Under the pieces are notes generated by a model. That model ran no database searches. It was not told where the DNA came from and was given only the letters and a program-made list of their open reading frames with translations. Below, in pieces: positions 1 through 49,105 of a stretch of 64,000 nucleotides of DNA; the first letter of the stretch is position 1; each line of letters starts with the position of its first letter. The translations under genes were made by a program, and so were the position numbers. Source of the DNA: Macrostomum lignano (taxonomy: Eukaryota); NCBI GenBank assembly GCA_002269645.1, contig NIVC01000236.1, positions 526,882 to 590,881 on the forward strand. Reading direction: 5' to 3'.

Positions 1-3000
1 CTGCTGAAGCCTTGGCCTCCGCTGCGTCGGAGGGGGCGGCTGGGTGCGGCTCGACAGTAGCGGGTGGGGCAGCAGGTGTCGTGGATGTCGGCTGTTGGGC
101 TGCTGCGGTCGCTGGCTTAGCGGTGGCCCGCAGCTTGAGGAGGTCCTTCTGAACCGTCTGGCCATCGGCCGGCGGCTTCTCGATTGGCAGACCGCGACTG
201 GGCCGATGCGCTGGCCCGCTTAGCTGCGGCGGTGGCGACGGCTGGTGAATGCCGGCGGCTGCGGAACCGGCGGCGCTAGTTGAAGTCGCTGGTTTCTCAA
301 CGTGCACCTCCTCTTTCGTGTCCGGATTCACAATGGCCAGCCGCTTTCTTTCTCTTATTGGGGCCGCAGCCTCCTGTTGCTGCTGGCCAGCTTGCTGCTG
401 CTGCTGTGGCGCAGGCTGGTGCTGCTCAGGGCCGGGCCCGCCGTGCTGCATGAATGGCTGATGAGGCGCGGGGGCGGGTCCGGACGGGTGGAACTGAGCC
501 CTGGAGTGCAGCTGACCAGTCTGAGGCCGAGTGCCGCTAGCATAGGCGCCAGGCACGAACTGCTGAGGATATGCCGGATTTGGCTGCTGATGATGCGGCG
601 GCGGCGGCTGCTGCTGCATCGCCGGAATGCCGTAGGTTTGCGGGTTGGAGCCGGGGTAGTTGGCCATGGCGTTCCACGGCTGCATTGGCGGCTGTGTGGA
701 CGGGGTGAGTGTGGTTCAATAGAATTTCAGCGGTTTGAGCACGGCGGCAGCAGTAGAAATTATTAAAATTTGAAGCACAATATGAAGCAATTTTTTCTTT
801 AACTTCAATAATTTTATACCAAGTCCTCAAACTATTAAGAAACTCAAAGAAACTTAAGACAATTAAAATTATTCGAAATAAACAGTTATAAAATATAATA
901 ATTAACAGGCACTAAAATCGAGCTCATAAAACGAACAAAACAGCCGAGCGGCAGAAAAAGCACCGAAACTGGAACGGCCGGTTCTCACTTTTGCAATCAG
1001 CGGAGCGGCCATTGTGAACACCTGGAACTGTGGCTTTAAGCAGATTAAGAATATGTGACAGCATGGGAAAGATAGGGAGTATTCATACTAGTGTTTGCAC
1101 ACTTCAGAAACTTGCACCGACAATAGGTATAAAGAACCAACTTGGGCCTACTGTTTCTTAAAAAAACATTTTGGGTGCTGGTTTTGTGCGAAAAAAAACA
1201 GTGGAGATAGGCTTCTTTCCTACACAAAACGGCGATAGCTAATGCAGCCCTAAAACAGTTCCTCGTGCTTCTAATGATTTGTCCTCGCTGATATACACAA
1301 CTCCAACAGTCTGTTTTTAACTCACATAGCCTGGCGGAACTTGCGGGTGCTGCATGGGCATCATTGGCTGAACAGGCTGCTGCACATACGGCGCCATGTA
1401 CTGCTGCTGCATCGAGCTGGACGGAAACTGGCCTGGCATGTTGCCAGCTGGCCAGCCAGGCTGAAGAGAGCCGGCTCCCTGCTGCTGGTAGGCGGCATTT
1501 GGGTTCTGGCCATAGATCACCTGGGACTGCGGCTGTCCCTGTGAATACCGATAGTTCTGAGCCTGCACGTGAAAGTGGCAAAATGCTGTGCTGCAACCTC
1601 CAAGTTCTCCACAGCAGAGTTGATGCTGTTACCACAATTATAACCACAACTCATCAGCCATGGGTAATGTAAGTATTGTATGAAAAAAGTACTACAAAAA
1701 TTTGGTTGCTTACCAAGTGCGCACGATTTCCCTCTTGAAATTCCGTTTGATAAGGACCTAAATGAATAAAATATATCAAGTTTGTAAAATTATGAAAATC
1801 AATATAGAAAGAAATGGAATCTCAATATCTTACCTTGGATATAAGGGCTGTTTGGAGAGTTAGTTAATTTTGGCAGTTAAGGAAAATAAAGAACTTTAGA
1901 AAAAATAGTCACATTTATATGCTAGCTTTTTAATTTTAAATTAAGTTAACTAATCTATAAGCTATTAACCTAAAAACTAAATTATCTTACAGTATACTTG
2001 TTTAAGTAAAGCTAATTCAATTATCTCCTAGCTTGTGTTTTATATATAGCTACTTAGATTATACATTTGTTTTTGTAACATTTTCAGTAGTCTCATATGC
2101 CTAATTGCCAAAGAGAAACAATATTAATTGTTTAAATAAATATTGCTTTTATAGACCATGAGCTTTAAAATTGCCTTTTATTTATGAGATATTCATTAGG
2201 CAAGCAAAACTTGAAAAAAAGAATAATTTCATGGCTAATAATAAAATAATAATAATAATAATAATAATAATTGTTTATTATACCTGCCCTAAGAGATATG
2301 CAACCAATAGCTTAGTAGCAACTATTATGTAGCACATCTAAAGGGTATATACATAGCTATTTAGTTCAAGGACTAGGAAGTTGCCATATATACCTTTATT
2401 TATCTTGGCTAATGTTGGTACCCATGTTATAGGGGTCTCCCTAAAACACGCCCTGCACCACTACACATTCAAACAAATTAGACTATAACTGAAGACACTT
2501 CAAAATGTGTTTTATGTTAAGCTTTAAAGTTTTTTTATTAAATTTAGTTTTTTACTTTGAAATATAAAATTCGGTGAATAATAAGTGATATTAATAATAA
2601 TATTAATAAAATAATAATAATATAATTTAATAATGAAAATGAGAATATAAAAAATAATAATATTTATAATAATAATTAAAGATACTTATTCCATTACTCT
2701 TACAACAAATAGTTTTCCTTGCAATCAAATACTGCATTGACAAAAATTTTATAATGTATAGCAGTTTGGGGCAGTGCAATGCATGTTTTAGGAAGACCCA
2801 TGTTATAGCTAGGCAAATTGAAACAATATATAGTTAAATGTCTTGCTTAAGGACACAAATTGTTACAAATAAGTCAGAAATCCAAGCCTCAACCTTTTAG
2901 TTATAAATCTAGCATTCTAACTATAAGGCTATAACTTTTAGCCTTGTAACTAAATACTTGGAAAAATTGTTTTATTAATATATTGGTAAAGATCAAATTA

Positions 3001-3681
3001 TTAATTTCAAATGATATAAAAATAATACTAAACCAAATTAATCAATAAAAAAAATAGTTGATTTAATTTTTAATGTGGTAAGGAATTGTTATTGTTTTAT
3101 GTGTCATTAAAATATTGATACAAAACAATAGAAATTTTTAGTGATAATGCCAATGGTTTTTGTCTCTAACTTTAATTAGCTTACTTAATATAGTTATTAA
3201 TTATTTATATTAATAAAATCTATTTCTCCATAACTATAAAAATAGCCACTTTACCTTTTAAATCTAATGCATTTTATAAGTATATACAATGACTATAGTA
3301 TAAAATTTATACAATATTTATATACTATACGATATAATATAACCCTTTATTATTAATATCCCAAATCCCAAAATTTTATTTTTAATTTGATAATATTATG
3401 CTAAGTAATTCTACAAAAATTAAATATATAAAAATCTACGAGTAATAAAGAAATCCTTCTGTCTATTTAAAATTGAAGTTCTTGTTTTGGAAATTTTCAA
3501 ACCTTAGCTTACATAATTACAAAGTACAAATATAGCTAAGATTTAGCTGGCCAATTCAAAGACCTTTGAATTAGATACTGGTAGGGTCGGCATGAAGCTA
3601 CTTTAGCAGCATATAATATTTTTTAAAGATTTTTAAGAAAGGATACGGTTGTTGGTAGTCTTGTTGATGCCGGTTATTCAT
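1..3681 (-). CDS. eIF4G: eIF4G paralogue B, 5' part (runs off the left edge). Exons 3681-3647, 1847-1834, 1757-1714, 1562-1326, 691-<1
   Basis: Inverted homologue of the eIF4G exons at 30171-37260, with identical sizes for the first four exons (35, 14, 44, 237 nt), GT-AG ends and compatible phases. Protein MNNRHQQDYQQP..AQNYRYSQGQPQSQVIYGQNPN..PPMQPWNAMANY..PIRERKRLAIVNPDTKEEV is open to the window edge. Confidence 0.85.
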
Positions 3682-5539
3682 TTCCAGAAATATTGACGCT
3701 CTTTAAAATGACTCTCTACAATTAGAAAACAGGTAATGCAAAATGAAAGCATGCATATCAAGTTAAGTAATTAATACAGAATTTAAGAGAAAAGGAAAAA
3801 AATGAATAATCTTACCCATAAGAGAGTACAAACAACTTTTCGGAGGAAGCAAAAATTTGTATCCTCGTGCGGTTGCACAATATAGGCAAAACTTCTAATT
3901 TATATGAACTCTCAAATTATAACAAAACCTAGGTAAATCGAAGATGCATGAATTTTACCTCTGCAAAGCAAAATAGAGCCAGACTTGGATGATTTTGGTA
4001 ATTTTCGCATCTGATTTTTTAATAAATCGGCGTGTGCAGCCCATTACTTTACAAAAGAAAGGTCTACCGGTTAAAGTCAAAACTGGGGAGTCAGAAAATG
4101 TAGAAAAAAATTTGTTGTTTCAATTGGTAATTTTTTATACAATTTTTTATATTTCCGTTAAGTGGTCTCAAAAAAACATTTTTAAAGCACAAAATACACC
4201 TCTTAATAAATTTCCTACCCATTTGTTAATCTTCACTTTTACGGAACTGTACGGACGCAGAATCAGAAACTAAATATAGTATTCTAAAAATAAATGTTTT
4301 ATACAAACCCGTAAAAGTAGTTTTTATCTGAAAAAAATAGGTAAATATTGCAATAGATATTTTTTAAATAAATATTAAGCTGGATTTTGTTAAACTGCTT
4401 ACTTTGTTTACGTCGCGCCTGTTTGTGTTCTGAAATACTCTCGTTAATTTAGTTATCAGTTTCATGTTAATAAGTACTTTATTATTGATGTTTGGCCTGG
4501 TTCTTCTTACGGATGTGAAATATCAGCAAACTTTTTTGGATTGAATTAAATATGAGATTTAGATATTGATTACTGACTTCTGTATTTCAAGCATTGCAAA
4601 CGTCTAGCATCAATTTTCTGCTTATCTAATTTATGAACAATAATCGATCGAGGATTCTAGATATATGCTTTATTTTATAAGCCACGGCTTATGAATTGGC
4701 AAATGACTCATGAGACTGAGGTTTAAATAATTTTACTGAATAGAATGACAAATAAAGGTGTCTATCAAGTTTTTTTTATAAAATAGCTTTATCCACCGTC
4801 GCTCTTGTTTAACTATATTTTTGTTCTGAGGCATAATTTGTAGTCTAGTTCAGATTGCTATTTATATTTAACTGTCCGTGTCTTAGGCCTATTTGATTTT
4901 TTGCTAATGACGTAGTAATAAAAAATATAATGTAAATATAAAATTTTGTACAGCTTTACAGCTTAGGATTACTTCGAAACTGATATATGCTTTTTTACAA
5001 AAGCCATTGGGCCTTAGCTAAGTGATAATCTACCTTATGATTACTGATAATGATACTGTTTATTATAGCCATCACTATGCACTTTTAAGTATATATATAA
5101 TTTAAATTGCTAAATAATTAACAAGTAGCAAATAAAACTGGTAATAACTTTTTTAAACTTAAACTTTCTAGTTTCATATAATTTGCAATGTAAAAAGCTA
5201 TATAAAATGTGACTTGCACTATTCTTTAAAATGTATAATTGCAATATGTTTTCATTTGCATTATTTGTTACATTTATTTCATTTAAAGCTCACATTATGA
5301 GCTTTAAGAACTAAGAACATGTTAAAAGTTAAAAATGCAAAACCTGATATATTTGCTTTTAAAAAAATTAGAATATAGCATTATTTTATTATATATTTTA
5401 TTGTTTACAAACTGGCTTTAAATGCCTAGCAGGAGTGTTTCCTTTTATACTATAGTATATTTAATATACCAATAAATTCTTAACTTGCTTTAGTAGAAGT
5501 TTTTTAGACTTAAATGTAAGTAAAATATGTTAAATGTTT

Positions 5540-15053: not shown

Positions 15054-18000
15054 TCACTTTGAGCTTTCTGACAATGGCAGAAGAAATTCGAGGGCTCTCA
15101 GCAATCTATCTGAGATGCGAGCGAGATTCAAATTCAGATTTGTCAATTCATTTGTAATTAATTAAACATGTTTAAGCATAGAATACAGGTGTAGCTCGTA
15201 GCCTCGAACCACTGTGAAACTAGCTTGAATATGAGTAGTGTTTGAGCAGCGCACAGGTCGAGTGCCGAATTCAAAGACACCAAGTAGTCAGGGTGCCAGA
15301 AGCAAAACAGCGATTTTGTGTGCTTCGTGTAGTCTGAAAAAGAAAATGGTTGCTCAGATTTATTTCTGTGCCAAGGACAACTTGATAACTCAGGACCGGA
15401 AACGAGCCAATTCATGGCGAAAAAAGTATGAGGCTCGTTTAAAAGCATTGTTCTATGGCCCATCCAAAGCTACGAAAGCGAAGAAATCTGAGCTGAAAAT
15501 TGAACTCTTCGCATGCACTTGCAATTGAGAAAGAGAACTTTTATTCTCGCTGAAACTAAATATCATGCCGAGAAAATGCAGCGTCATTTTTTGTTGTGCA
15601 AACTACAATAGTAACCGTGATCGGAATTTTGCAGTATTTTCGTTTCCTAAGGATGTAACTGAACGAGAGGCTTGGCGGCTGTCACTGCCTAATCAACTGA
15701 CGGTAAGACTTTCTTCAAATGTGCTTTGTGAATCAGATTTAGCCTGGCCACATGAATTCATTAGCAATTTTGTTGTTGTTTAGACCGTGACAGACTACAT
15801 GGGCGTGTGTGCTAAGCACTGGCCTCAAGATGCACCAATGATAAAGGGAAGAAATGAAAGGCCGCTACATGGTTCTGCGGGTTTTCGTTTCACCAAACTA
15901 TTCCGTGCGATGGTTTCGGTTACACTCACCAGTTGCGGCTTGAGATCTGCTTGGATTTCAACCAACATTAAAGTATTGGTCGCAACTTGAAGCTATCATA
16001 AATCGTTGTAAAAACTCTACAGTGGACGTCGAAAGTGAGGTGAGGGCATTATCTAAGAACCTTTCTATTGCCTTTAACCACGATGGAGTTGTACCGGACA
16101 CATCGGTTACATTCATCCTGAAGCTACTCGAGTTCGCCACAACGCACCCAAACAATCGACGATACGACATTGCCACTATGCGCCAATCTGCTTTGCTTTA
16201 CCTGATTAGCAGTTCTGCATACGCGCATGCACAGACGCTCCTTCCTTTGCCCCACCAACGCACATTACGCACTCAGTTGGCTGGTCTAGGAGAGATTGGC
16301 ACTGAAAAGGATGCACACGAGATCGTAAAGGTCGCATTTGCCAAACTGAAACCGCAGCAGAAGTCTTGTGTGTTGATTTCCGATGAAATGTATGTCCAGC
16401 CATCGATTCGCTATCGGTGCCAACATCTGCTCGGCCAAGCGTCAGACAATCATAACAAAACTGCTCGAACAGTGCTCGCAATAATGTTGAAGCCATTGTT
16501 CGGCGGTAAGCCATTTGTTCTAAGGCTGATACCGATTTTTCTTCTTTCCGCCGACTTTTTGTACCATCAGCTTCGAAAGTGCATTCAACTCGTCAATCAA
16601 CATGGAGGCCTCGTTGTAGCGCTTGTGTGTGACAACCATCCCACAAACAGAAAGTGCTTCTCGATGTTTGCTGCTCAACAGACAAAACCTTGGATCGGCA
16701 AATCTGAATCACAGGAGTCTACTTTCTTTTTGCTCCATGATGTTGTACACCTTTTGAAGTCAATTCGGAACAATTGGCAGTCTGAGTCTGATGGAATGCT
16801 AACCATTCGTTTGCCCAAGTCTACAACAGTCGTCACGGCTAAGTGGTCAGACATTGTAGAACTGTATAAATCTGAAGCAGATCACATTGTTAAGCGTACA
16901 GGCATTACATACGAAGCGTGTTTCCCAACAAATGTCCAAAAGACTAAAGTCAATTTAGCTCTTCAAGTTTTCTGCGACAACGTTGCTGCCGCCCTAAAAT
17001 GCGACGGGAAGAATGGAACAGCTGCATTCATTGACGTTATTTCAAAATTCTGGAAAATTGTGAACTGCAAGAACCCGCATCTTCATGTTAGACTTAATGA
17101 CCCAGACAGACGGGCTGTCTATTCAGTTCAAGATCCAAACATCAAGTTCCTGCGCGCGCTTTGCGAATCGATTGAGGAGATGCGCAGTGGAAAGGGAAGA
17201 ACAAGACACCAATCTCTGACGTCAGAGACGAAGAGGTCATTAGCTTACACTATTCATGCAATCATAGAACTATGCGAACGACTGCTCTGCGAATCTGGTG
17301 CAACGTACATTCTCATAGCGGAGTTGCAAAGTGATCCTCTGGAAGCAGAATTTGGTGTTTATCGCCAAATGAGCGGAGGCAATTACTTTATCTCAGTAGA
17401 GCAAGTTCTTCTCAGCGCTCGACTCCGACGAATGAAACTCTACACAGTGTTAGAGCTGGATGGATTCGTGCACAACAAAGGACTTTGCTGCGACACGCCC
17501 CTTTCAGACGAAGAACTTTCGACGCTCGATGACTGCTACGTCAAAGCTGAGAGCCTATCAATTGCCGAAAAGGCATCTGTTTATTATATATCAGGTAAGG
17601 CATGCATTTGTGTTACTTGAACTTGGATGGAAATAACGATTGCTGAGGCGAAGGACAACTGAGGCATAATAATAACATTTCAGGCTACATAACGTTTAAG
17701 GAGAAAATTACCTGTGATGATCCTGCCGAAAATTTAAACACCCCACTCGGTGAATTCACTGAAATGATTTCCCGGGGAAAGTTGAAGCACCCGCCAAAGT
17801 GGCTGTTCAATTTTGCTTGCCTTTGTTTCGGATGCTTCATTTCGCTGCGATCACCGTCATGTGCTTTGCGAGTGCGCAAATTGTTTTCTGCCGTTGGCGA
17901 GTTTTACTTCCCTGAAGCAGATGTTCTGGGATGCTGCGTGCGCCTCACCAACTGTTTCTTCAAGGGTTATGTTCAACGAGGAGCAAAGAGCGCTCCTTCA

Positions 18001-18694
18001 CCGGATAAAGTGCACGATAGAAAAATACTGAAGCTGAGTGGACAGTGAGCGAACCTGGAGCAAACACTTCACTATTTATCATAGTCAGCTCTTGTCCCGT
18101 TCTGTGACTGTTATTTTCCTCTCTGTTTGTAGTTCAGATGAAGAAAAAATCGTAAATTTTTCTCGAGTTTCCTTATACATGTGCTGTGTGTACAGCTTTC
18201 CCATTGTGTATTTTCACGACGGTTACTTTATGTAATAAAAATATTCAACATTTAAGAAAACCGACCCTGCACCCGCCTTCTGACTGCCTATCAAAAAGTC
18301 AAATATGATACGAGTATGCATTGGCAACTGAAAGCATGCGCATACGGATGGGCCATAGAACAATGCTTTTAAACGAGCCTCATACTTTTTTCGCCATGAA
18401 TTGGCTCGTTTCCGGTCCTGAGTTATCAAGTTGTCCTTGGATACAGATTAAATCTTAGTGATTAGCAATCTGTAGAACTCAGCAGTATTTTTTTAATTTT
18501 TTGGTCTTCAATGATATGTTTTCAAAGCCTAATTGTCTCGAGTAACTTGTGACTGTGAATCTACCTTCGACAAAGGACACGCATGTACTTGCTATATTCC
18601 CGATAACCTTCAGCAGCATCCGCAATTCTTTGTAGAAGTTGCGGGCCGCGTCTCTTTGGCAACGCCCTCTTTCTGATAGGAATTCAGAGTTCCT
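15054..18694 (-). CDS. 3' exons of an unidentified gene: 18694-18565, 15333-15187, 15109-15054
   Basis: Three GT-AG exons in compatible phases (1, 1) giving RNSEFLSERGRCQRDAARNFYKELRMLLKVIGNIASTCVSFVEDYTKHTKSLFCFWHPDYLVSLNSALDLCAAQTLLIFKLVSQWFEATSYTYRLLRALEFLLPLSESSK*. No family recognised. Confidence 0.5.
15372..18439 (+). mobile_element. P-like (THAP9-type) DNA transposon P1, defective
   Basis: Perfect 94-bp TIRs (15372-15465 and 18346-18439) starting CAAGGACAAC. THAP exon 15565-15702 (MPRKCSVIFCC), VCAKHW in the next exon, and transposase motifs CVLISDEMYV, CDNHPTNRK, DVVHLLKSIRNNW, LQSDPLEAEFGVYRQMSGG. Internal deletion after the THAP domain and a TGA at 15941 where P2 has Arg. No TSD found. 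Confidence 0.92.
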
Positions 18695-22365: not shown

Positions 22366-25300
22366 CAGGGACAACTAAAACCCTCGGGACGCGAAACGAG
22401 CCAATTCATGGCAAAAAATCTGAGGGGCTCGCTTAAAAGTATTGTTCTATGGCTTTTTCAAGTCTTCTCTGCTATCAGGCATTAACGGTTAGATTAAATA
22501 GTAAAGCGAGGCAATGTCGAGTATTTAATTTAAAGAATAGGAACCAGTGATATAATTACAATGTAATTTACAATAAAGTAACCGCCATATCAACAAAAAA
22601 CTCCAACGGCAAGAAGATAAAAGATGAAAGCAAAGATATAACTCCAACGGCAAGAAGATAAAAGATGAAAGCAAAGATATAACTCCACCGGCAAGAAGAT
22701 AAAGGATGAAAGCGAAGATGAAACTCCAACGGCAAGAAAATAGAAGCAAATACGGAACTCCAAGGACAAGACGACACAAACAGTCAGTAGCTCGTACATA
22801 AAGGTAACGCTGGAACTTCACCTACTGAGCATCTAACTTCCGAAGCTTTCTATCATGGGATGTCGTCGGTATTGGTGGGAGTTTTGACGAGCGTCTTACT
22901 AGTCCTTTGAAAAAAACGTTGGCTAGCCGACGGGACACTGTCCATGCTGAACTGTGTCTTAGTTGGAAAGTAAAAGTCCTTAATAACATAAAACAGCTTC
23001 TGCACGCGAGTTGCGCACGTAGGAGAGTGCAGAATAAAACTGCTGTAGCAGAGACAGGATAAGTCTAACAGCCATTGTGGAGGATGACAAAGCTTTCCGC
23101 GAGATAACTCTTCAGTGAATTCGCTGGCTGGAATGCTCGTCTCTGATATCAAATCTGTTCCTTTGATGCCTGCCTTCTTTAGTCGCTGTATAACCTGTCA
23201 ATTTCCAATTAAGCACGGTTTGAATTGTTTTTTATGAGATTGTGTAAAACCTCGTTGTGAATTAAATTTTAATTAATATCCAGCTTACCTGCGATATAGT
23301 GTAGAGCGAAGCCATCTCCGAAATGGAAAGCTCCTCTGATTTAGCGGCACAATTATCAATGGTCGCCAGTTCAATTTCATTCAGCTGTTCATTGCAACAT
23401 TTGCTCCGATCGTGCTTGTAGTCTGCTAATTCAAGGGATGCCAATAATTTCATTCGTCGGAGTCGAGCACTGAGCAGCACTTGCTCCACAGATACATAGT
23501 AGTTGCCGCCGCTCATTTGGCGATATACGCCAGCCAGCCAGCAGAACGTAGCTGATTCGTGGGTCGGACAAAAGAACCTCACACATCTCACAGGCTCCGC
23601 GCAGTGAGTTTACTAGCGCTGACTTGGTCTCGGGCGTCAATGAATGATGGCGAGCTCGGCCTTTTCCACAATGTGTCGAATCAAACGAATCCGCGAGCGC
23701 GCTAAGAAATTGTATGCTTTCATCTTGAACGGAATAGACTGGTCGCCTGTCCGGATCCCGTAGTCGTGCGTGTAGATCAGGATTTTTACAATTGACAATT
23801 TTCCAGAATCTCACTATGGTTTTGATAAATTCCGCAGTGTCTGAGTATCCATCACACTTCAATGCAGCGGCAACCCTTTCATCGAGAACTTGGAGAGCGA
23901 GACTGACTTTAGTTTTCTGAGTGCTTGTGGGATAACAGGCCTCATGAGTTAGACATGTGCGCTTGACTACGTGGTCTTTCTCCATTTGGTACAGGCGTAC
24001 CACGTCTGACCATTTAGCGGATATCTGTCTGTCAGCGCCAGGAGGTTGAATGCTTAGAATTCCATTCGCTTCCATTTGCCAATTGTTGCGAATGCATTTG
24101 ATAATGTGAACGAAATCGAACAGCATGAAGAATTCCGACTCCTGTGCAGCATCCGTTCCAATCCATGGCTTCTCTCTTCCATCGCTAAATAAAGCAAAAC
24201 ACTTGCGGTTGGTCGGGTGATTGTCGCTGACGAGAGCAACGACACGGCTACCGTTGTTGTTAATTGCTTTAATACATTGGCTGACGCATTTTCGCAGAAA
24301 CTCCGCAGACAAAATGTATGTCGGCAATAGTCGGACTACAAACAGTTTTCCACCAAGTAATGGCTTTACCATTATGGCCAAAATTGTCCTAGCAACCTGG
24401 TCCGGATCGAACATATTACGCAGTTTCGCTGAGCTCCTGATAGACTAGCAAAAACTGACTGGATCACATCGGCTGCGTCGGTTTCTGTGCCAACTTCTCC
24501 TGTACCTGCTAGTTGCAGCTGCAGCGTTCGGGGATGAGGCAATGGCAATAGCTTCCGTAGGTAAGAGTAAGCCGAACTACTGATCAAGTAGAGCAATGCT
24601 GACTGTCGCACTAGTGAAATGTCATAGCGGCGATTGTTCCGATTTACTAATGTAAGGCTAAGTTGTCGAATCAAAAACTGAAGCGACCGATCCAAATCAG
24701 AGTCAGAATCTATATCGTCACTGATTCTACTAACAAACGCTTCGACTTCACGTTGGGGATTGGCGTCGGAATTTTTGCACCGCACGACAACAGCATCCAG
24801 TTGCGACCAGCGCTTGAGTGTCGGTTGAAATCCCAACAAGTCTCGAACCGAAATCGGTGTATGCAGTTTGAATGCACGAATCAGAAAGTTGGGTGAGACA
24901 AAAATTCGAACAGACAGGTCTCCATCTTTATCTAACGTAAACAAGTAAACGTCTTCGTTCAGAATAGCTGTGTTCAGTGCATGTCGAGATACGACATCCG
25001 AATTTTTCACCTCAGCTCGAAAACTTTCCCATGCCGGCAAAAAATCAAGCAGCTGAAAAGCGTCCATCTCATCGATGTCGCTGCACCTCGCGTCAGAAAG
25101 AACACCGCGCTTTTCGGCCTGTCGGTCTTGGTCTAAAATAAGAGTAAAAATAAAAGTAAGATAATTGTGAGCGGCAAAATCGATATAGACGCTAAGTGTT
25201 GAGCAATCTTTAAGTTACGTACCTTGGTTCTGAACAAAACACGAGCTAGGAACTCCATTAAAAACAGAAGGAGGATTAATTGGCCTTTTGGTAGAGTTTT

Positions 25301-25800
25301 TCTTGACCATTGGAGCATCGCTTGGCCAATGCTTTACGCACACGCCCATATTGTCAGTCACTCTAAACTAATAAATTTTGGGTTTCAAGTTGTTTGGACG
25401 AGACTGGCATGCAGAATTGAAGCGGAATTATGCAGCAGTAATGACAGCAAATGATCTGGTTTCTTACCTGGAGAATATTTGGCAGCGCCTTTCTCCATCG
25501 CTCTCGCTCCTGTGGATCTCTGGGAAACGCAAATGTCCGTGTTCGAACGGCTTCAGAGTTGTAATTTGACGAGCACGGAAATACGCTGCACTTTCTTGGC
25601 ATTTCATCAAGTGAATAAAAAATGCTTCTCTTGATATAGTTCAGCTTAGCTTCACTGCTGGCCGCAGCTAAAGCAATTTTAATTTGCCTGATAGCAGAGA
25701 AGACTTGAAAAAGCCATAGAACAATACTTTTAAGCGAGCCCCTCAGATTTTTTGCCATGAATTGGCTCGTTTCGCGTCCCGAGGGTTTTAGTTGTCCCTG
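22366..25800 (-). mobile_element. P-like (THAP9-type) DNA transposon P2, defective
   Basis: 116-bp TIRs (22366-22481 and 25685-25800) starting CAGGGACAAC; 8-bp TSD ACCCCACG at 22358-22365 and 25801-25808; THAP MPRKCSVFPC..VCVKHW; transposase homologous to P1 with two small deletions in catalytic segments. Confidence 0.95.
22598..22762. repeat. 41-bp tandem repeat, about 4 copies, inside P2
   Basis: Unit AACTCCAACGGCAAGAAGATAAAAGATGAAAGCAAAGATAT; CTCC recurs at 22601, 22642, 22683 and 22724. Confidence 0.9.
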
Positions 25801-29278: not shown

Positions 29279-30170
29279 ACACATTGTCTCATGAATGTAT
29301 TTTTAGAAGCCTAAAATAATGATTCCTAAGCGTGGAATAATGAGCGTACAGCATGACACAATGATAATTTTTGTGCTGAAGAAATGAAATGTACGAGTAT
29401 AAAACGTTTTTCGGTGAAAATGGCCTCCTAAAATTTTTCCAAGAACCGTAGTTTGTATTCCTTTTACTTGAATAGTCCTTTTACTCAATTAATTTCTTAG
29501 ATAAAATGCTGGGAGACAGGTAAATGAAAGTATTTCTGTCGTATCGCTAAGTGCAGTTAGTATCTAGAGCACTTTAGCTGAATGGGGTTTCGCCCCATTT
29601 TCTAATCTGCGCTAGAAAAATCCGATTTCTTTTGAGCGAAATTAATTGTATCGGTTGTACAAAGACTCTATTGACCAAACATGTTCATTCTGACACATGT
29701 ACTTAATAATTTTTAAAATCCCGGAATTGTTTCACTTTTAGAAATTTTAACACTCTTGCACCATTCTTATGTAAATAGTAAAAAATCAGCAAAAAGCAAA
29801 ATAACTTTTATTGGGATAATACATTTCATAATTATTCATTGATATTTTGATCTTTCAACTGATCTAGAAAACGAAAAGGCGCAAATTCATGTTACTGGTC
29901 ATGCGGCAATTTTATTATTAATAATAAAGAATTGTTTATTAAATTCGTTAAGCTAGGAATGAAGTTTCGCTCCCTTAGAAAAGTTTTTGGTGCTTGTACT
30001 GTCTTATGGGTAAGTAAGAATAATTATTTTCTGAAATTCTTTACTAATTACTTAAATAGAGTTAAATTCTTTCATTTTGCATTGCCTGTTTCTGCTGTTT
30101 TTTTATTGTAGAGCCTTAGATGGTCATTTTAATTTTTAAGGAGTGTCAATGAATGACAATATTTCTGGAA

Positions 30171-33100
30171 ATGAATAACCGGCACCAACAAGACTACCAA
30201 CAACTGTATCCTTTCTAACTAGGGCCTAACTTTCTATTATTAACTGCTGCGAAATTAACTTCATGTTAAACTGTTAACCCTTACAGTTTGTAATTGATTT
30301 TTCAATAATCTTTTTTGCTTTTATTCTACTACTATTAATAATACTAAAGATTATTTATTTGGTTAACCAACAAGCAACATATTAATAGTTAATAACTTTG
30401 AACAAACTGACTTACTTTAATACCTACTAATTGATTTAGGATGGTTCTTAGTCTTAGAAATATATTTCTAGAATTATTTGGTTAGCTATTAGTATTAGTT
30501 AGATTATAATAATGAATGTCTATTTGTTAAGTATTGTATGCTTAAGTTGTCTTAAGAACTTTAAAATTTAATTTTGCAATATACTAGGAGTTGACTTTAA
30601 TTCTACCACCAAGCTACAAGTTATGATAAAGATGTTTTTTCTTACTATAAGTATCTTAAAACTTAAAAGATATGTATGTATGTGCATAGTAGTTCAACTT
30701 AAAAAAATAAAGAGCAACCTGTGCTCAAATTCATATCTATGGCCAAGCCATAGCATCTTCCCCCTTTAGTTAATTCTGTTCAGGTCACGTCCTAGTCAGC
30801 CTTTCCCAATTAGGTCCTGTAGAAAACTCTTGGTTTCTATCTCAGTCTTTGGCTACGCCTTGGTTTGGGGCTGCACTCTGGCTCCGGTGATTGTGTTGGC
30901 TTGTCCAACTCAGCAATCTTTTCTGGTAGCGACTCCTAGGCCTGGTCCTAATTGACTTGTAGGGGTCTCTGGTCTGTAGCCTATTCACCCTTTGGCTCAT
31001 CTTGCCAAAATGGTAGCAATTAATTGAAGTGTGCCTTTTTGAACTTTGGATTTCTTTGTCCGTCTTGATCATTGCCATGCTTCTCCCTATTAGGAGAACA
31101 ATCTTGGCTGGAATGGGTGCGTCGTGCAAGTTTTTGTAGAAAACCTCGTCCTGTAGGTTCACCTCTCTGGTAGTGAAGGGAACTTGCAACTTCTGACTAA
31201 ACATGAGCTCTGCTGGAGATTCTCCTGCCCTGTTGCTAGATGATCAGTAGAATAGAAAAATGCAATCGATGGTCTTTTGGCTGAATCCATTCACTTTTAT
31301 TCCTTCTTTGATTGTATGAACGAAGCACATTGCAGTACCATTACTTTGCGGATAGTAGGCAGATGATGTCAGATGTGCGCAATCAATCCCTTTGAACCAT
31401 TCAGTGAACTCGTGACTCACAAAACTTGGACCATTATCAGATATAAGCATGCAAGGAATTCCAAATTGAGCAAATGTTCTCCTAAGTCTCTGTATTACTG
31501 TTCAGGCTGTCATGTCATTTCTGATATGCACCTCCAGGTATCCAGAGAATGAGTCCATAATCACCAACAGATATTGTCCCTAAATCAGGCCAGCAAAATC
31601 AATATGGTTGCAATCTCATGGTCCTGATGTCTCTGGCTACAAAGTGTAAAAATTTTGATTAGACAGCTTTGCCATTTGACATATCTGACACTTATTGATA
31701 GCACTTTCTATGTCCTTATCTATTGCTGGCCACCAGAACTCTATCCTTGCTAGCAATTTCAATCTGGCAATACTCCCTATAGAAAAGTTGTAAATCCGCG
31801 GACAGCGTCCGACGCACTTTAGAAATTTTTTTAAAGTGCGGTGCACGCACAGGCGCGCAGTGCCTGCATGCGCTGCCTTTTCTTGCTGGCTACTGCTCTA
31901 GCAAATACATATGCATGGAAAGGGGTCATCTAATACCTCTGTGGAAGGGGCCTATACACTTATAATTTATAAAGCTTAGAGATGTTCCAAAATTTCAATT
32001 TGAATTTTCCAAAATTAGAATTTTTATTAAGAGCAAATTTCAATTTCGAATAAAATTAGAACTTAAAATTTGGAAGCGTCTAAAAAATTGCTAAATATAT
32101 ACTAATTTCTGCTACATATACATGTATTTCATTTTGCATAAGCAGTAAATTGAATGTAAAAAGTGAGCATTGGTCATACTAAACTTTGTTTTTCTGCATT
32201 TTGATTTTGGAAAATTTCAATTTTGAATTTGGAAAGTTAACAAATTTTGATTTCAAGGAAACTGCTCTTTCAGGACATCTCTAATAATCCTAAAGCGCGG
32301 GAAAATAATTTGACTTTATTCTAAAGCACGCGTCTGCGGGTTTTCAACATTTATTCTAATAGGGGCAATACTAAGGTGGGTCTAGTGAACTAACTGCCTT
32401 GATTGCTCTAGCTCTCAGTGATCTTGGAATAACCATTCATTGTCCTTGTAGAATCACTCCAGCTTGCGTACTCAACTTTCCCTAGACATACTTATGAAGT
32501 TCCTTGGCACTGAAATCCTCCTGGACAATGGCCTTCCAGAGCTGAGACATTTCAGTGCATCTTCGTGTGGCTGAATTAACTTCCCTGTACGATAAAAGAT
32601 TCTCTGGCAGGTCCACATGGCCTATCTCCAGCGTTGTTTTGTTCTCTTGTGCAATCACCATTCGGGACAGAGCATCAGATATCATGTTTTTTGTTGATTG
32701 ATACTCGATCTTGTAATCATATGCTGTCAGGAAGATGGCCCATCTCTGCAGTCTAGCCAAAACTTGCACTGGAAGTTCCTGGTCTGCTGCTAGTAAGAAG
32801 ATGATTGGCCTGTGATCTGTAATCTGTTATGTCCTAAGACAGACCAGCCAGCTTCGTCTCGCACTCTGTACAAGCAGGGAAACTCAGCCCCAGTCCTGCT
32901 GCTTGCCAACCCACTATTGCACAAATGCGCAGGCAGTAGGCTGGCAACCAGGGTCGCAGCAAATGCACAGGCCCTGGTGACGATAACCTAATCAGGGGCT
33001 AAGATCTGAGGAAAGTTGACCATTGGTTTTGGGATAGAAACTTTAACATGTTGCTAAGTGTATATAGTTTTTATATCTATACATGTAGCATTGTCTAAAT

Positions 33101-36100
33101 AATTAAGGACTATTATATAAACTTAAGCTCATAAATTAGTCTCTAAATTTCTCCTTGCTTGTTCTCTCCTATCCTAGGTCTAATTTTTTCACTGCCAAAT
33201 CCAGTTTATTGATGTCACTATAAGCAAAATGACATAAATTTGTATACATAGGTTACTTGGGCTCCACTTTATGAGCTCAAGTTGATAGGCCCTTTATATC
33301 TATCTTGAGAAAGTGAAATTTTGAAGCTTGATTTTGCTCCAAAAGCTTAATATGCATAACATAGCTTTTTTAAACAAAACTAGGAAAAATACCAAATGTG
33401 TTGTTGATAGTAGAAAAATCATATACAATTGTAGTATAAATATGAAGCATCAAAAGATTAGAATAAAAGTAGGAATTTCAAAGTGGCAAGTTGCAATATT
33501 TAAAAAAAGCTAACATGATGAAACAACATTATTTGACAATCTAGAAGCAAAATCATATTAGCTATATAATTCTACTTATTCTACTTTAAAAAATAGAATA
33601 GTTCTACTTAAAAAAAACTTAAAGATATTATTTTTGGCCATGCTTTTTTAGCCTTTATATAAATTTTCTATAATACAAATAGTTCAATTCAGGCTCTTGT
33701 TGAAGGCATTGCATTTAAACTAATTTTAAATTTGCCTTTGTACTATTGCAAACTACTATATATTGCATTATATTCATACATTATTTGACAACAATATGCT
33801 CAACTCAACATGCGCATCATGACAACCCTTGTATTTAAAAGTGTGCCAGATAAATGGTTATAAAGCTATCATACAAATCTGACCATGTTTTCGAAAGTTC
33901 TTTCTTTTCCTTAACTGCCAAAATTAACTAACTCTCCAAACAGCCCTTATATACAAGGTGAGATATTGAGATTCAATTTCTTTCTATATTGATTTTCATA
34001 ATTTTACAAACTTGATATATTCTATTCATTTAGGTCCTTATCAAACGGAATTTCAAGAGGGAAATCGTGCACACTTGGTAAGCAACCAAATTTGTGTAGT
34101 ACTTTTATTTTCATACAATACTTACATTACCCATGGCTGATGAGTTGTGGTCATAATTGTGGTAACAGCACCAACTCTGCTCTGGAGAACTTGGAGGTTG
34201 CAGCACAGCATTTTGCCACTTTCACCTGCAGGCTCAGAACTATCGGTATTCACAGGGACAGCCGCAGTCCCAGGTGATCTATGGCCAGAACCCAAATGCC
34301 GCCTACCAGCAGCAGGGAGCCGGCTCTCTTCAGCCTGGCTGGCCAGCTGGCAACATGCCAGGCCAGTTTCCGCCCAGCTCGATGCAGCAGCAGTACATGG
34401 CGCCGTATGTGCAGCAGCCTGTTCAGCCAATGATGCACATGCAGCACCCGCAAGTTCCGCCAGGCTATGTGAGTTAAAAACAGACTGTTGGAGTTGTGTA
34501 TATCAGCGAGGACAAATCATTTGAGGTGGGGGCGGCTTCGATTTGGTCTCCGGTGGGATTGTCCGGTGTTCTCTTCATACATGCGCAACTTTGGGAATCA
34601 CCCGGCCGTTTCTATTGGCAACACGCACATGTAAGTCGCTATTGGCTGATACCAGTCACGTGACTACTTTTCCGTCCAATAGCGACTTACATGTGTGTGT
34701 TGCCAATAGAAACGGCCGAGTGAATCCCAAGGTTGCGCCCAAGCATGGTTCTCTTGATTTAATGTTGAGTTTGAGCGGCTCAGGCCTTCGAATTGGCGCC
34801 GTCGTCAGTTCGCACTAATTAAATCCGGAAAATTTGCGTGGACGAATCCCGATAGAAATGTCTCGAAGTTTACTCCGTCTGCCGGGGTCCTCAATCCCGG
34901 GGGGAGGGTAGTTTAGTCGTAGGCGAGCGGTCTTCGTTTGGCGCGAGCGTTCATATGCGGGTCCTCAGACACCGAATTCAATGTACCTCGTATGCTTGCT
35001 TTGTTACTAACAGTAGAGTAGCGCTGCCACCACCGTAATCCGCGTATTACGGAACGTAGAAGTCTCAGAGCTTGCTTCGAGATGAGACTGGGTTATTTTA
35101 CGCCCCTCGGGCAAATGACTCAAGATAAGCTATGGCTTTTAATCCAGGCACGGAGAAATAACTGTAGTAGATTGCTGCGGACTTATTAAAAGGCTGAATA
35201 ATTGAAAACTGATTAAGTTATTATTTTATTATTTAATTAGAACGACGAGCTATGAAAACGGTGGTGCCGCGAGGGCGACTATAAATTAGCAACTATTAAT
35301 GAAAGGATTTACTAGCAGTGCACAGGTAATGAGTCAAAGTAAGGTTAAACTAAGCACAAGAAGGAGAAGGAGACGGATAACGAACAAAACAACAAGAAGG
35401 GGTGAATTAAACTTTCCTCGCATCATAGTATTTATAATAGTAAGCAGAACATTTAGTGGCATCGTAGGTACAGAAAAAGGAAAGATGGTTATTAAACTAA
35501 ACCATAACGTCATAATTATGAGCATAAGAAAATTAGCACTGGGGAGATGGGCAAAAACAACAAGTTCAAAAAAGGGGCACGGTGGCCAGAACCGGGGAAC
35601 CAAGGGTCAGAACCAGGGAGCGGGAGATGACGGAAGGGTGACGTCAGGGCAGCACCATAAGGTGGACGGAGGAGGGCCAAACCCGGGACAACGGCAAAAA
35701 TAACGAACAGAAACGGAACGAAGATTAAATTTCAAAAAGGTCAGTGGGGGGCTCATCCTACCACACATTAGAAGCACGAGGAATTGTTTCTTAGAAACTG
35801 TTTAGGGGCTGCACTAGCTAGCTAAGAAAATGCTCAAATTTTGAGAATATTCTGAAAATATTCAGCAACAGCTCAGGAGCAAGAACTCCTGAGCAAATGC
35901 TCATGAGCTCTTGCTCACTTTATTCATGCAGACCAGAGTCGATGCTTGAGTTTGAGCAACTGCTTACTAGCTTTATTCATACAGCCTTATGTTTTTAGAA
36001 ATTTTTTGGAGCTGCAAAGCAATACACTAAGAACACTTATTCTGCTTGATCTGAAAAAGCTATTTGAGTTTATTTTTTCGCAAGACGATTTTAAGCTGTA

Positions 36101-39100
36101 TGATAAGCAATCGGGTGTTTTGCCAATGTTATTGCTCCTTCTAGGCTCAAATTCAGAATCACGTTGTCTACTTTCAGGCTGCTTATTTACGTCAGCATCC
36201 ACGGTATTGAGTAGATCAGGTGGTTTGTCCGGTTTTTGGTCGTTCTACCTCCTCCAAATTTGGGCTTTGAGTCATCATGTCCGACGGATAAACCAAGATC
36301 AATTTCGACTGTCTGCAAAGGTATTAGGTCTTAGCAGCAATTTTAGTATATTAGATATGCTCCAGAACCTTGGTTGATAAAGACGTCGCCGAATACGAGA
36401 AACTTATGATCTTTGTTCATCGCAATGTCTACAGTAACGCGTTCGAGAAATGCCTCAAAGTCGGCCCAGCTACTCTTACTTAGATTGGCAGTTACTGTCC
36501 TCCATTCTGTATGCGGAAGTTTCTGCTTTTCTTCGAGCAGCTGCTCATACCCGCCTCGTCACCGTTTCTTCCATTAAAGAAAAAATTCCTGAACATGGGG
36601 CTTCGAAATGTGATAATTTCTATTGAGATTGAAGCCCACTCACCCTGTCCACACAGCCGCAAATGCAGCCGTGGAACGCCATGGCCAACTACCCCGGCTC
36701 CAACCCGCAAACCTACGGCATTCCGGCGATGCAGCAGCAGCCGCCGCCGCCGCATCATCAGCAGCCAAATCCGGCATATCCTCAGCAGTTCGTGCCTGGC
36801 GCCTACGCTAGCGGCACTCGGCCTCAGACTGGTCAGCTGCACTCCAGGGCTCAGTTCCACCCGTCCGGGCCCGGCCCTGAGCAGCACCAGCCTGCGCCAC
36901 AGCAGCAGCAGAATCCGAACACTAAGGAGGTGCACATGGATAAACCAGCGACTTCAACTAGCGCCGCCGGTTCCGCAGCCGCCGACACTCACCAGCCGTC
37001 GCCACCACCGCCGCAGCTAAGCGGGCCAGCGCATCGGCCCAGTCGCGGACTGACAATCGAGAAGCCGCCGGCCGATGGCCAGACGGTTCAGAAGGACCTC
37101 CTCAAGCTGCGGGCCACCGCTAAGCCAGCGACAGCAGCAGCCCAACAGCCGACATCCACGACACCTGCTGCCCCACACGCTGCCGCCGCTACCGTCGAGC
37201 CGCACCCAGCCGCCCTTTCAGCAGCAGTGTTCGCTCCCGCCGCCCAGCCCGAGTCGAACTCCATTAAGCTTTCACCGCTAGTTCAACCAAATTTCAAGCC
37301 GGAGCCGTCGACTAAGCTGGACAAGAAGCTGAAGTACGACCGAGACTTTCTGCTGAGCCTGCAGTTCACTGACTTAAGCTGCCAACGGCCCCAGCTGCCG
37401 GGCGACATTCCTGAGCTGCTGCCCAGAAGCGACTCTGTAAGTGCTTGTGAATTAGCCAGTTGGGTTATACAGTACAATGTGTCTGCACCTGCACATCAAA
37501 AATTTCAAAATTGTGGTTAGGATTTTACATAAGCAATTTATTGCTTTGACGTGGCCAATATGTTTATCTTTTTACTTTATCATAAAAATAAGGCCAACAG
37601 CGAGTGGACCGCAATAACGACGACTCACAAGGCACAGAAAATGGACGCTCACAAGATGGTCGTCGGCAGCAACCAGGAGCAGGGCCAGTCACAGACTCGG
37701 CTCGGCTATGCGACCTCTCAGGTCCCGGCGCGCTGTCCACCCGCCCTGGAGGCGTCGTCAAGAAAGGAACTTACATACTCGTATTTGCAAGAAGAATGTT
37801 GTCAGCCTTTTTCGGAACTGGTCAGGATTTTGCCTTTTGCTCACTTGGTTTTCGAAACTCTTGAGTTATAGCAATCGACTGGTAATTGTCATTTATTTTG
37901 CAGCAGTGCTTCAAGTCTGAGGCAGATGTTGACTTCAGCGGTTGCCCAGTGACTCCTGATGCCGAAGAGCTGGCCGAAATCGGGCTCAAGATTCGACCGA
38001 TATTCGAGTCTCTTGATCAGTCTAACTTGGAGTCCAGCTTGCAGCAACTGAAGAGCTTTTATGAGCTCATGACACTGGCTGGTCTCTGGGCCTGCGCTGA
38101 CGCAGTCTACCAGAAGGTCAGCGTTTAATTTATTTTGAACTCCTAAATGTGTCTTTCTTACCTTACCTCACCTCATAACTCTTGGAAGTTGGAAACTGAT
38201 CAGCGTGCAAGAATTTTCGGCTTTTCTTTCTTTGCTACTCGTTTAGTAGGCGATCTAGTTTGTGATTAACTTTTCTGTTGTTTTTTTGCGACAGGCAACA
38301 GGGAAAAGGTCCGACGCAGGCTTGTGCGCCGAGTTCAGCAGCCAGCTGGTCCATGTAAGTTGAGCATTTCTGAACCTGTAATGCTGTTCTTTGTATATCT
38401 TGTTATGATGCTGTCTTCTATCCGGCCACGATCTTTTTGTAGTTGAAGGCAAATTTTCAAGGTGCGTCGAATGATGGCCACTGGCAGTTTGTCAGCTTTA
38501 AGTCCCTGCTGATGCACAAGTGCCAAGAGGCGTTGCGAGCTCCTTTGATTGAGCAGTTGGCGCGAGTGGCAGCTCATTGGCAGTCGAAGATTGACGCGGA
38601 GGTCTCGGATGACGGCAAGAAAGTGTTGGAGGAGCGGACAGACGAACAGGTGAAGGACGCGAGGACCCGGTACTACGGCAATATAGTGTGAGTTCGTGCA
38701 GATGATGACCTGTCAGATTTGTGTTGCGCAAGCATTGATAAGTTAAGGAGAATAAATACTTATAATCCTTCTGTATTGCCAAAAAGCTTCTGAACTTTTG
38801 TATGTAAGTTAGTCACGATACAACAGGACGGACTGTAACTGAGCTTGAATTTCGGTTATTTGTCGGTCTTGTTAGTCTTGCTAGTCAGGTTGCACATGAG
38901 GTCATGAGTCATGTGAAATAATGAGACAGCTCTTCTGGTCCAGAAAGTGAGAAGATGATCAATTCGTGCAAACAAACCATAATTCCGATCCCCCGATCTT
39001 TCCATTACATTGACTTTACAGTTTCGTTGGCGAGCTCTACCTTCGAGGAGTCCTGCCGGTTGCCGAGGTGCACCGCGGCATCCAGTCGCTGCTGAAGTCG

Positions 39101-45905: not shown

Positions 45906-46839
45906 ATGTTCCGCCGTCCGCTTTTGCCGTCTCGAGTTCCGCCGCTTCTCTTGCTGGCCCTGTGGCTGCTGCTGGCCGGGCCGGAATTCGCTGTGGCCGA
46001 TCGATCGCTGTGGCTGGAGTCTGACAGCCAATGCGGAGCTGTCCGGCTGTCTGTGAGCAGCCGCGGTCTCGTGCAGTGCCTGTACGAGTGCTCCATCTTG
46101 AGCTGGTGCCTCTGCGCTCGCTTCGCAGACTCCGAGTGCTCCCTGATGCTTCCCGGCGGCGAGGTGTCGCCCACAGCTGCCGGGCTGGCCGCTGCCGGGA
46201 CCGTGTACAAGAACCAGCAGTTCGATTGTGAGCAAAGGGGCATAAGATATGGCTATTCATGCATCTGTTTACATGCAGTCATCATTTGCACGGGTGATGT
46301 ACAAAAGTAGCGAAAGCCTAGTGATCTGATTCATCTGATGGTCTGCATCTATAGTATTTGTATCTCTGTTGCTTCAAAAGGGGGAAGTGCCGTTCCCAAT
46401 CACTCCAATAAGCCAGCAGTTCCACCTTTTATTGCTTTTAGTCTCCAGCATCTGCAAGCTGCCGCTCTCCGGCTGCGAGCAGAGCACCGTGTATTCGACC
46501 GGCAACCTGTGCGGCAAGGCTGCTGACGGCAACGTGGCCCAGGCGTTCTCGACTTGCTTCTGCACCGAATCCGGCGTCAACGAGTGGTGGGAGGCTGGCA
46601 CAGCTGACCCGGCCTTCATCACTGAGGTGACGCTGTACAACCGCGGCGACTGCTGCCCGCACCGGCTCAACAACTTCGTCATCACGGTGGACGGCGTCGC
46701 CTGTGTGGACTTCGTCACCTCAACCGCTTTCTCGGTGCGGAACTTCACCTGCAACATGGCCGGCCGCAGGCTGCGGGTGACCAACCGGCTGAACGGGCAC
46801 CTCACCTTCTGCGAGGTGGTCGCTTACGGCTACATGTGA
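45906..46839 (+). CDS. Secreted protein with a Cys-rich PAN/apple-like segment and an F-type lectin (fucolectin) domain. Exons 45906-46227 and 46442-46839
   Basis: Signal peptide MFRRPLLPSRVPPLLLLALWLLLAG; QCLYECSILSWCLC; AADGN..WW..EVTLYNRGDCCPHRL..LTFCEVVAYG*. The phase-1 junction is compatible. Confidence 0.82.
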
Positions 46840-47097
46840 TTGACAGGCTTGCCTGGTCTCTGAGCAAAGCTGACGAACATTTTTCTCTTCTTACAATCGA
46901 TCAAGCTGCATACAGAGGGGACTTGAGGAGGTCGGGAAACGTTGTTTCTAAGAAAAGCTTTATAAAGCAGATCATTCCAAGTTTTTTCCTACAAAAGTAG
47001 CTCGTATTGTTCGTGCAAAAGCAGCCCCAACATATTTTCTAAGAAGTGAGATTTCCTGTCTTTCTACTTCCATACTTAGGCTGTTGAACTTAATGTC

Positions 47098-48589: not shown

Positions 48590-49105
48590 TCCTACCAGAA
48601 GCATATTTTACTAGAAGCATATTCTACTAAGATCATATTCTACTAAGATCATATTCTACTAGAAGCAGCATATTCTACTAGAAGCATATTCTACTAGAAG
48701 CATTCTACTAGAAGCAGCATATTCTACTAGAAGCATATTCTACTAGAAGCATTCTACTAGAAGCAGCATATTCTACTAGAAGCATATTCTACTAGAAGCA
48801 TATTCTATTGGAAGCAGCATATTCTACTAGAAGCATATTCTACTAGAAGCATATTCTACTAAGATCATATTCTACTAGAAGCATATTCTACTAAGATCAT
48901 ATTCTACTAGAAGTAGTGCAGATTCTACTATAGAAGCATATTCTACTAGAAGCAGATTCTACAATAGAAGCAGATTCTACAATAGAAGCAGATTCTACAA
49001 TAGAAGCAGATTCTACAATAGAAGCATATTCTACTAGAAGCATATTCTACTATAGAAGCATATTCTACTATAGAAGCATATTCTAATGGAAGCATATTCT
49101 AGTAG
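48590..49105. repeat. 16-bp-based minisatellite
   Basis: Unit AGAAGCATATTCTACT and variants. Confidence 0.95.

Follow-up and report, generated by a model that had tools for sequence, protein, structure and literature searches.

Introduction

The need for the eIF4E-eIF4G-PABP closed loop in translation is a subject of active debate. The last 64 kb of Macrostomum lignano contig NIVC01000236.1 (assembly GCA_002269645.1, Mlig_3_7), a stretch of 64,000 nt hereafter called the window, carries two eIF4G genes, A on the plus strand and B on the minus strand, and raises the question of whether a natural eIF4G can keep its cap contact and do without its PABP contact. A first-pass annotation of the window had proposed that B retains a PABP-binding motif, that A has lost it by an in-frame deletion, and that A is a cap-binding but PABP-independent eIF4G. 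The motif, PAM1, comprises residues 166-200 of human eIF4G1 and binds PABP RRM2 (PMC12709193). In this study, both genes were compared with each other, with further M. lignano copies, and with other metazoan eIF4Gs. We find it plausible, and moderately probable, that A is a cap-binding eIF4G unable to contact PABP by the canonical route. A transcribed natural paralogue with a constrained eIF4E site and without the PAM1 core would amount to an experiment by evolution on the closed-loop question, in a regenerating flatworm that is capable of transgenesis. Should the loss prove to be no more than incidental decay, in a genome with a great deal of duplication, it would be ordinary paralogue erosion.

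Results

Two eIF4G genes in opposite orientation

The window was placed on NIVC01000236.1 because locus L003 (1-13681) corresponds to window 13681-1 with 100% identity over 13,681 nt. Positions given below are those of the window; position p is contig position 526,881 + p. A and B lie head to head, about 26 kb apart, and the long inverted-repeat arms shared by the two loci end at 1933 and 33858. The nearest relatives of both genes are eIF4G proteins of the eIF4G1/3 scaffold type, and the closest matches outside M. lignano in the protein search were vertebrate eIF4G3/eIF4G1 (E 1e-85 to 1e-53). That A and B are alleles or homeologues was ruled out, because one contig carries both in opposite orientation.

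The PAM1-like motif of eIF4G-B

The minus-strand translation of 1-703, in copy B, contains PAPQQQQQAGQQQQEAAAPIRERKRLAIVNPDTKEEVHVEKP and HQPAPQQQQQAGQQQQEAAAPIRERKRLAIVNPDTKEEVHVEKP. The B peptide APIRERKRLAIVNPDTKEEV matches metazoan PAM1 in sequence and position, and its assignment as a homologue of PAM1 is well supported by these comparisons. It fits, as IRERKRLAIVNPDTKEEV, the pattern [KR]-rich-x-[IL]-x-I-x-[DN]-P-x-T found in eIF4G relatives, where the motif closes a Q/P/Y-rich N-terminus and precedes the eIF4E site. Related peptides occupy the same place in vertebrate eIF4G3/eIF4G1 (24 residues, by protein comparison), sea urchin eIF4G (STRERKLIRIQDPNTNQDITD), ant eIF4G (QNAILDIVNPLTGKNISDEI), the Logan-assembly proteins P0020 (RRQRSLIQIVDPSTGKDISDEI) and P0081 (NKKILIINPATGEEI), and the older M. 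lignano paralogue Mlig006204 (TQKKILTFIDPRTNSAIEL). RERKRLAIVNP of B aligns with the human 12-residue PAM1 stretch; a basic cluster leads into [IL]-x-I-x-[DN]-P, and the whole lies ahead of the eIF4E site. Alignment of the A and B N-termini with metazoan eIF4G, the check suggested in the first-pass annotation, therefore identifies the B motif as PAM1-type by sequence and position.

A PDB search with a single peptide returned no match, and a profile was needed. The top PDB match of the non-vertebrate motif profile was the human eIF4GI PABP/NSP3-binding peptide (1LJ2 chain C), first of 177,635 sequences at a marginal E of 0.041. With a profile built without B, B scored +18 bits at the motif.

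A 66-nt in-frame deletion in eIF4G-A

The plus-strand translation of 36645-37439, in copy A, contains PAPQQQQNPNTKEVHMDKP and HQPAPQQQQNPNTKEVHMDKP, with KKLKYDRDFLLSLQF further on. DNA alignment with B places a gap of exactly 66 nt in A. The missing nucleotides (329-394 in B, minus strand) encode QAGQQQQEAAAPIRERKRLAIV, the N-terminal basic/hydrophobic half of the PAM1-like motif. The junction in A lies at 36911-36912 (plus strand), where CAGCAGCAGCAG is directly followed by AATCCG and, in the protein, QQQQ by NPNTKEVHMDKP; translation, DNA alignment and the mapping of the annotated A protein (P0241) agree on it. The presence of the motif segment in B and its clean in-frame removal from A, as first proposed, were thus borne out by both translations and by the DNA alignment. 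The residues taken out of A include IRERKRLAIV, the counterpart of a human 10-residue PAM1 stretch. Replacement of the human residues (by AAAATIAAAA) abolishes PABP co-immunoprecipitation, with translation still rescued (PMC13081929). The C-terminal half, NP-x-TKE-V, is all that A retains. A substitute motif was sought by profile scan over the whole of P0241, and none was found (maximum -1.2 bits, at the NPNTKEVHMD remnant), so the objection that A might carry an equivalent motif elsewhere did not hold. PAM1 was lost in A rather than gained in B, because the outgroup paralogue Mlig006204 and other metazoan eIF4Gs carry the motif.

The ends of the deletion share only 1 nt of microhomology. An unannotated intron was ruled out, as the segment lacks GT..AG ends. 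Other changes in A lie near the gap: a 42-nt in-frame deletion 45 nt upstream (about 440-481 in B, minus strand, encoding GPAPAPHQPFMQHG; flanks 100% identical, 3-nt microhomology), a 3-nt deletion 15 nt downstream, and insertions of 3 and 9 nt.

The deletion is also present in GenBank PAA87386.1 (P0241) and in UniParc entry P0095/UPI0007A16EE9, for which MetaClust is the sole source shown and the provenance is not established. An error confined to one record is unlikely because both entries carry the deletion. An assembly or annotation artefact (an indel error from long reads or the collapse of a repeat, with the real A carrying the motif) is very improbable. The region is CAG-rich and the long-read assembly highly redundant (PMC5730564), but the segment that A lacks is no simple repeat, and a clean 66-nt in-frame loss accompanied by several nearby substitutions rarely arises from sequencing error.

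A further explanation is that the B motif is no working PABP site in flatworms, or that A reaches PABP otherwise, through the NPNTKEV remnant, a PAIP1-like adaptor or an extra MIF4G domain, and that the closed loop is unaffected. We consider this improbable. The marginal profile match to the human peptide speaks for it, as do the NP of B in place of vertebrate DP, the missing DITEEI tail, and one study in which a KRERK mutant of human eIF4G retained some PABP binding (PMC4174440). The Paip1 MIF4G domain (6yxj_B) is also among the structural neighbours of an A-only domain described below. Against it, the motif keeps its position and its basic/hydrophobic/[DN]P pattern all the way from vertebrates to the second M. 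lignano paralogue, and the human replacement mutant described above no longer co-precipitates PABP.

The eIF4E-binding segment and the core of eIF4G-A

A is Mlig022532g1, whose annotated product PAA87386.1 ("hypothetical protein", 1617 aa) carries the deletion. It maps exactly to 30153-44738 (plus strand) as 19 coding exons, all GT-AG, in an open frame. GenBank models of this assembly come from a genome-guided RNA-seq transcriptome (StringTie/TACO plus de novo assembly) and not from ab initio prediction (PMC5730564). Since its model derives from RNA-seq, A is a transcribed, annotated gene. With its intact splice sites, open frame and a ratio of non-synonymous to synonymous substitution rates (dN/dS, omega) below 1, it looks functional.

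Exon 5 of A (36657-37436) holds the shortened N-terminus, the deletion junction and the eIF4E-binding region. The eIF4E-binding segment, KKLKYDRDFLLSLQFTDLSCQRPQLPGDIPELLPRSDS, lies at 37323-37436, and YDRDFLL, which A had been said to keep, is indeed found at 37335-37355. A YxxxxL-phi sequence thus stands upstream of MIF4G in both copies (KYDRDFLL in A, KYDRGFLL in B), and AlphaFold2 predicted a helix across YDRDFLLS of A. YDRGFLL occurs in all three B copies (P0089 residues ~497-503, outside the window) and still meets the YxxxxL-phi consensus, whereas YDR[DE]FLL is the reading in A, Mlig006204 and most metazoan eIF4Gs.

Downstream, the canonical MIF4G domain and linker of A are encoded by 40258-40614, 40700-40759, 40860-41101 and 41182-41832, and MA3 and W2 by 42045-42321, 42398-42573, 43700-44259, 44347-44484 and 44578-44738 (stop). 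Pfam PF02854 matched MIF4G of A in two stretches (E 1.3e-36), and PF02847 matched MA3 at 23.5 bits (cut-off 23.2). The last exon matched PF02020 (W2) at E 8e-4 and 19.8 bits, below the cut-off of 30; in an alignment with vertebrate eIF4G3, this region falls at the W2 end. An intact core in A, of MIF4G, MA3 and a probable W2, is supported. A GC-rich tandem repeat of 24/29 nt occupies 42644-43690, in an intron between the MA3 exons.

Omega was estimated for A versus B by the Nei-Gojobori method. It was 0.35 for the whole coding sequence, 0.48 for the N-terminus, 0.15 for MIF4G and 0.04 for MA3-W2. The eIF4E-binding segment (38 codons) gave 0.15 (dS 0.52, dN 0.08, p = 5e-4). These values support strong purifying selection on the canonical and downstream eIF4E-binding elements kept by A, and we read the eIF4E-binding function of A as conserved throughout. 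Core changes were also polarised with the three B copies and sister copy C (described below). On the A branch, 20 were synonymous and 19 non-synonymous, compared with a neutral expectation of about 1:3.4, and the core omega was about 0.3.

Coding identity between A (30153-44738) and B (L003 10001-18638) is mosaic: 98-100% in alignment columns 1-320 and 720-1431, and about 80% in columns 321-720. The diverged block flanks intron 5, has a dS of about 0.3, and includes the eIF4E-binding segment. This mosaic points to a duplication of long standing that gene conversion has homogenised; A is probably an old paralogue whose ends were homogenised with B by conversion between the inverted copies.

N-terminal deletions and the sister locus

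In the protein alignment with B, A shows ten in-frame deletions (14, 22, 1, 8, 109, 6, 4, 1, 21 and 1 aa), together with insertions of 1 and 3 aa. The length of each of these 12 coding indels is divisible by three, and all but one fall in the N-terminal third. The deletions take about 187 of some 590 residues, about a third, from the disordered N-terminus, and one of them removes an RGG-rich stretch after the eIF4E site. The single clean lesion of the first-pass annotation therefore stands as to its size and frame, but it is one of ten.

A sister locus, L002 (NIVC01000003.1:458027-481738), is syntenic with window 14217-55413. Its copy C (Mlig018935g1, P0002, 825 aa) is annotated from MRKTDCPYVPGY, just before MIF4G, and has the DAP5-like layout MIF4G-MA3-W2 only. 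No similarity to A exons 1-5 or to the A-only domain alpha (see below) was found within 6 kb upstream of it. Exon 6 of C is nearer to B (94%) than to A (88%), and 8 synonymous and 15 non-synonymous changes fall on the C branch. One intact A-type copy was found, compared with three B copies.

Several observations weigh against a cap-binding, PABP-independent role for A. The PAM1 loss, as one of ten N-terminal deletions, may be a by-product of general trimming where constraint is relaxed (omega of the N-terminus about 0.5); because these deletions remove about a third of the region, a chance hit on the 22-aa motif is not unlikely. The lower-identity island (94%) around the PAM1 deletion has an omega of 0.62, indistinguishable from neutral, and pairwise dN/dS cannot assign constraint to A alone. 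Copy C has lost the whole N-terminus, which suggests that the N-terminus of an A-type paralogue is dispensable. The NP-x-TKE-V half remains in A, and in one study human eIF4G kept some PABP binding with the KRERK cluster mutated. A could also contact PABP indirectly.

These points feed an explanation that we regard as possible, though the less likely one: PAM1 was lost incidentally in a redundant duplicate whose disordered N-terminus is being whittled away, and which is drifting to a DAP5-like form or a pseudogene, so that PABP independence was never selected. The extent of N-terminal loss, the omega values of the N-terminus and of the island, the absence of any exons 1-5 from the syntenic NIVC01000003.1 copy, the copy numbers and the extensive recent duplication in M. 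lignano (PMC5730564) all fit it. It sits poorly, however, with indels that are in frame throughout, intact splice sites at 19 of 19 exons, an RNA-seq-derived model and a core omega of about 0.3 on the A branch. The eIF4E-binding segment is, moreover, tightly conserved within the most diverged block (dS 0.3-0.5), and gene conversion homogenised the flanks without restoring the motif.

A second MIF4G domain in eIF4G-A

Two sets of coding exons are found only in A, and neither the tandem MIF4G arrangement nor the linker-copy exon that they give rise to had been noticed in the first-pass annotation. The first is a single exon at 37593-37820 (plus strand; ANSEWTAITTTHKAQKMDAHKMVVGS...PFSEL), phase 0 in and out, whose first ~115 nt copy, at about 92% identity, the conserved linker motif that follows MIF4G in exon 9. 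The second, the alpha cassette, comprises four exons (37904-38116, 38295-38354, 38443-38687 and 39022-39379, plus strand), also phase 0 in and out. Since both are phase 0 in and out, skipping either would keep the reading frame.

Alpha encodes a second, highly diverged MIF4G domain, and PAA87386.1 thus has two MIF4G domains in tandem. Its exon phases are those of the canonical MIF4G exons. It shares 42% protein identity and 45-62% DNA identity with the canonical domain, and retains 15 of 32 family-conserved positions. Its structure was predicted with pLDDT >90; the best structural matches were human eIF4G HEAT1 (8huj_B, target TM-score 0.79, E 4e-10) and DAP5 MIF4G, and its neighbours include Paip1 MIF4G and, distantly, the UPF2 MIF4G domains. 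Among the eIF4G relatives checked with Pfam (A, B, C and Mlig006204), two MIF4G stretches occur only in A. Neither of the two protein databases searched yielded a further alpha-like protein. A cluster-representative search with the alpha exons led to P0095, whose cluster contains P0241. As the annotated P0241 and P0095 both include these exons, pseudo-exons were ruled out. The divergence of the linker fragment (8%) does not match that of the adjoining alpha (about 45%).

Gene models and neighbouring features

The first four exons of A, located by short-word search and P0241 mapping, are 30153-30205 (ATG), 33944-33957, 34034-34077 and 34232-34468 (plus strand). Truncation of A at its 5' end, where the repeat arms stop at 33858, was ruled out by exon 1, in which the short-word search found the start ATG shared with B at 30171-30205; the 5' region upstream is partly conserved with B. 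Six codons before the shared start, A possesses a further in-frame ATG (MTIFLE-MNNRH...; 30153-30173, plus strand, compared with 3681-3700, minus strand, in B). This ATG, at which the annotated A protein begins, arose through substitutions that are absent from B. Intron 4 of A is about 2.2 kb long, compared with 634 nt in B. The extra ~2.1 kb (34524-36628, plus strand) is probably a repeat-element insertion; the intron contains two open reading frames (35299-35703 and 35946-36377) with no Pfam match.

B (P0089, 1427 aa) comprises 14 exons by exact spliced mapping on L003, and runs on the minus strand off the start of the window. Exons 1-4 lie at 3647-3681 (ATG), 1834-1847 (a 14-nt micro-exon), 1714-1757 and 1326-1562. 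Exon 5, partial at the window start (1-691), encodes the Q/P-rich N-terminus and the PAM1-like motif. The domain order of B, PAM1-like motif, YxxxxL-phi eIF4E-binding site, MIF4G (PF02854, E 2.5e-27), MA3 (PF02847, 25.2 bits against the cut-off of 23.2) and W2, is the full metazoan layout.

The spacer between B and A contains two P-element-like DNA transposons, at 15353-18458 and 22366-25800. Both are framed by 113-116-nt terminal inverted repeats, and their open reading frames match TNP-like RNase H, GTP-binding and P-transposase helix-turn-helix domains. An inverted repeat of 127 nt (27373-27499/28173-28299; 98% complementary, arms 673 nt apart) could be a small non-autonomous transposon. 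The gene downstream of A, at 45906-46839 (plus strand), specifies a signal-peptide-like N-terminus together with an F5/8 type C (NedA-like galactose-binding) domain; the predictions P0003, P0093 and P0094, found only in UniRef, join it to the eIF4G C-terminus. From 47000 to 64000, up to the contig end, the window consists almost wholly of tandem-repeat arrays with 10-55-nt units.

Discussion

The locus allows the opening question to be answered in graded terms. The data establish the deletion and its polarity, the homology of the motif, the intact gene model of A, the signals of selection and the lack of a second motif. For copy A, loss of PABP binding, initiation competence and any specialised role are what we infer from its sequence. 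A is an older paralogue, its ends kept similar to B, probably by gene conversion, and is transcribed with its reading frame under purifying selection. It retains the eIF4E-binding segment and the eIF4A/eIF3-binding core. The 66-nt deletion has removed the counterpart of the human stretch whose mutation abolishes PABP binding. Because the eIF4E segment and core are kept and the PAM1 core is deleted, A is predicted to be cap-bound without the PABP RRM2 contact. It would assemble a cap-bound eIF4F lacking that canonical contact, and is probably a natural "open-loop" variant. The proposal that A is cap-binding but PABP-independent is thus plausible as far as the lost PAM1 core, the constrained eIF4E segment and the intact core are concerned; the loss of PAM1 may have been either selected or incidental.

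A stronger form of the proposal, which we consider unlikely, is that Mlig022532 is a neofunctionalised eIF4G. It would have kept cap binding through eIF4E and dispensed with its contact to PABP, with the RGG-rich segment and with most of the linker, and it would have gained a duplicated post-MIF4G linker motif and a second, fast-evolved MIF4G domain. Such a protein could hold two DEAD-box helicases, or another helicase or partner, and would serve closed-loop-independent initiation on a class of mRNAs, and the persistence of the deletion in a gene-converted tract would reflect selection against restoration of PAM1. Nothing on the expression of Mlig022532, Mlig018935 or M. lignano eIF4G was found in papers and supplements, and the suggestion in the first-pass annotation that A may serve a different mRNA class or cell type gained no support from this analysis. 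The unique alpha exons offer a handle for paralogue-specific probes and RNA interference (RNAi).

Comparison with known systems

Two human forms resemble A in keeping the eIF4E site, MIF4G, MA3 and, in A probably, W2 without a working PABP region: eIF4GI isoform a, whose N-terminus is the shortest, and eIF4G1 with the engineered delta-PABP mutation. eIF4GIa did not co-immunoprecipitate PABPC1 (PMC4141738), and delta-PABP eIF4G1 still rescued bulk translation in human cells (PMC13081929, a 2026 preprint). Unlike A, these forms are made from one gene, through the choice of initiation codon or by mutagenesis. In A, an internal deletion has fixed the loss in a paralogous gene of its own, and the upstream Q/P-rich N-terminus is kept. 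The caspase-3 middle fragment casp3-cpM likewise has eIF4E, eIF4A and eIF3 sites without the PABP domain, and sustains translation (PMC13081929, PMC12709193). It is, in contrast to A, a proteolytic product that is not encoded as such, and it also lacks the C-terminal eIF4A/MNK part.

Drosophila eIF4G2, a tissue-specialised testis paralogue, shares with A a divergent N-terminus. It was rejected as a PABP-less precedent because it co-immunoprecipitates PABP (PMC4388691). eIF4G2/DAP5/p97/NAT1 is, like A, an eIF4G-family paralogue without a PABP-binding site (PMC12709193). The eIF4E site, too, is absent from DAP5, but A keeps it under strong constraint. With a core more than 95% identical to that of B, A is no DAP5 orthologue. 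A DAP5-type protein lacks both the eIF4E- and the PABP-binding regions; A does not, and the sister copy P0002 would qualify by layout only.

More than one MIF4G-fold domain per chain, as in A, is also found in UPF2 and in CBP80/NCBP1, a multi-MIF4G protein. Unlike A, these are no eIF4G-type translation-initiation scaffolds. Forms of eIF4G without a PABP site were thus already known in isoform a, casp3-cpM, delta-PABP eIF4G1 and DAP5. What is new in M. lignano is a separate paralogue in which loss of the PABP site has become fixed and goes together with a tandem MIF4G domain.

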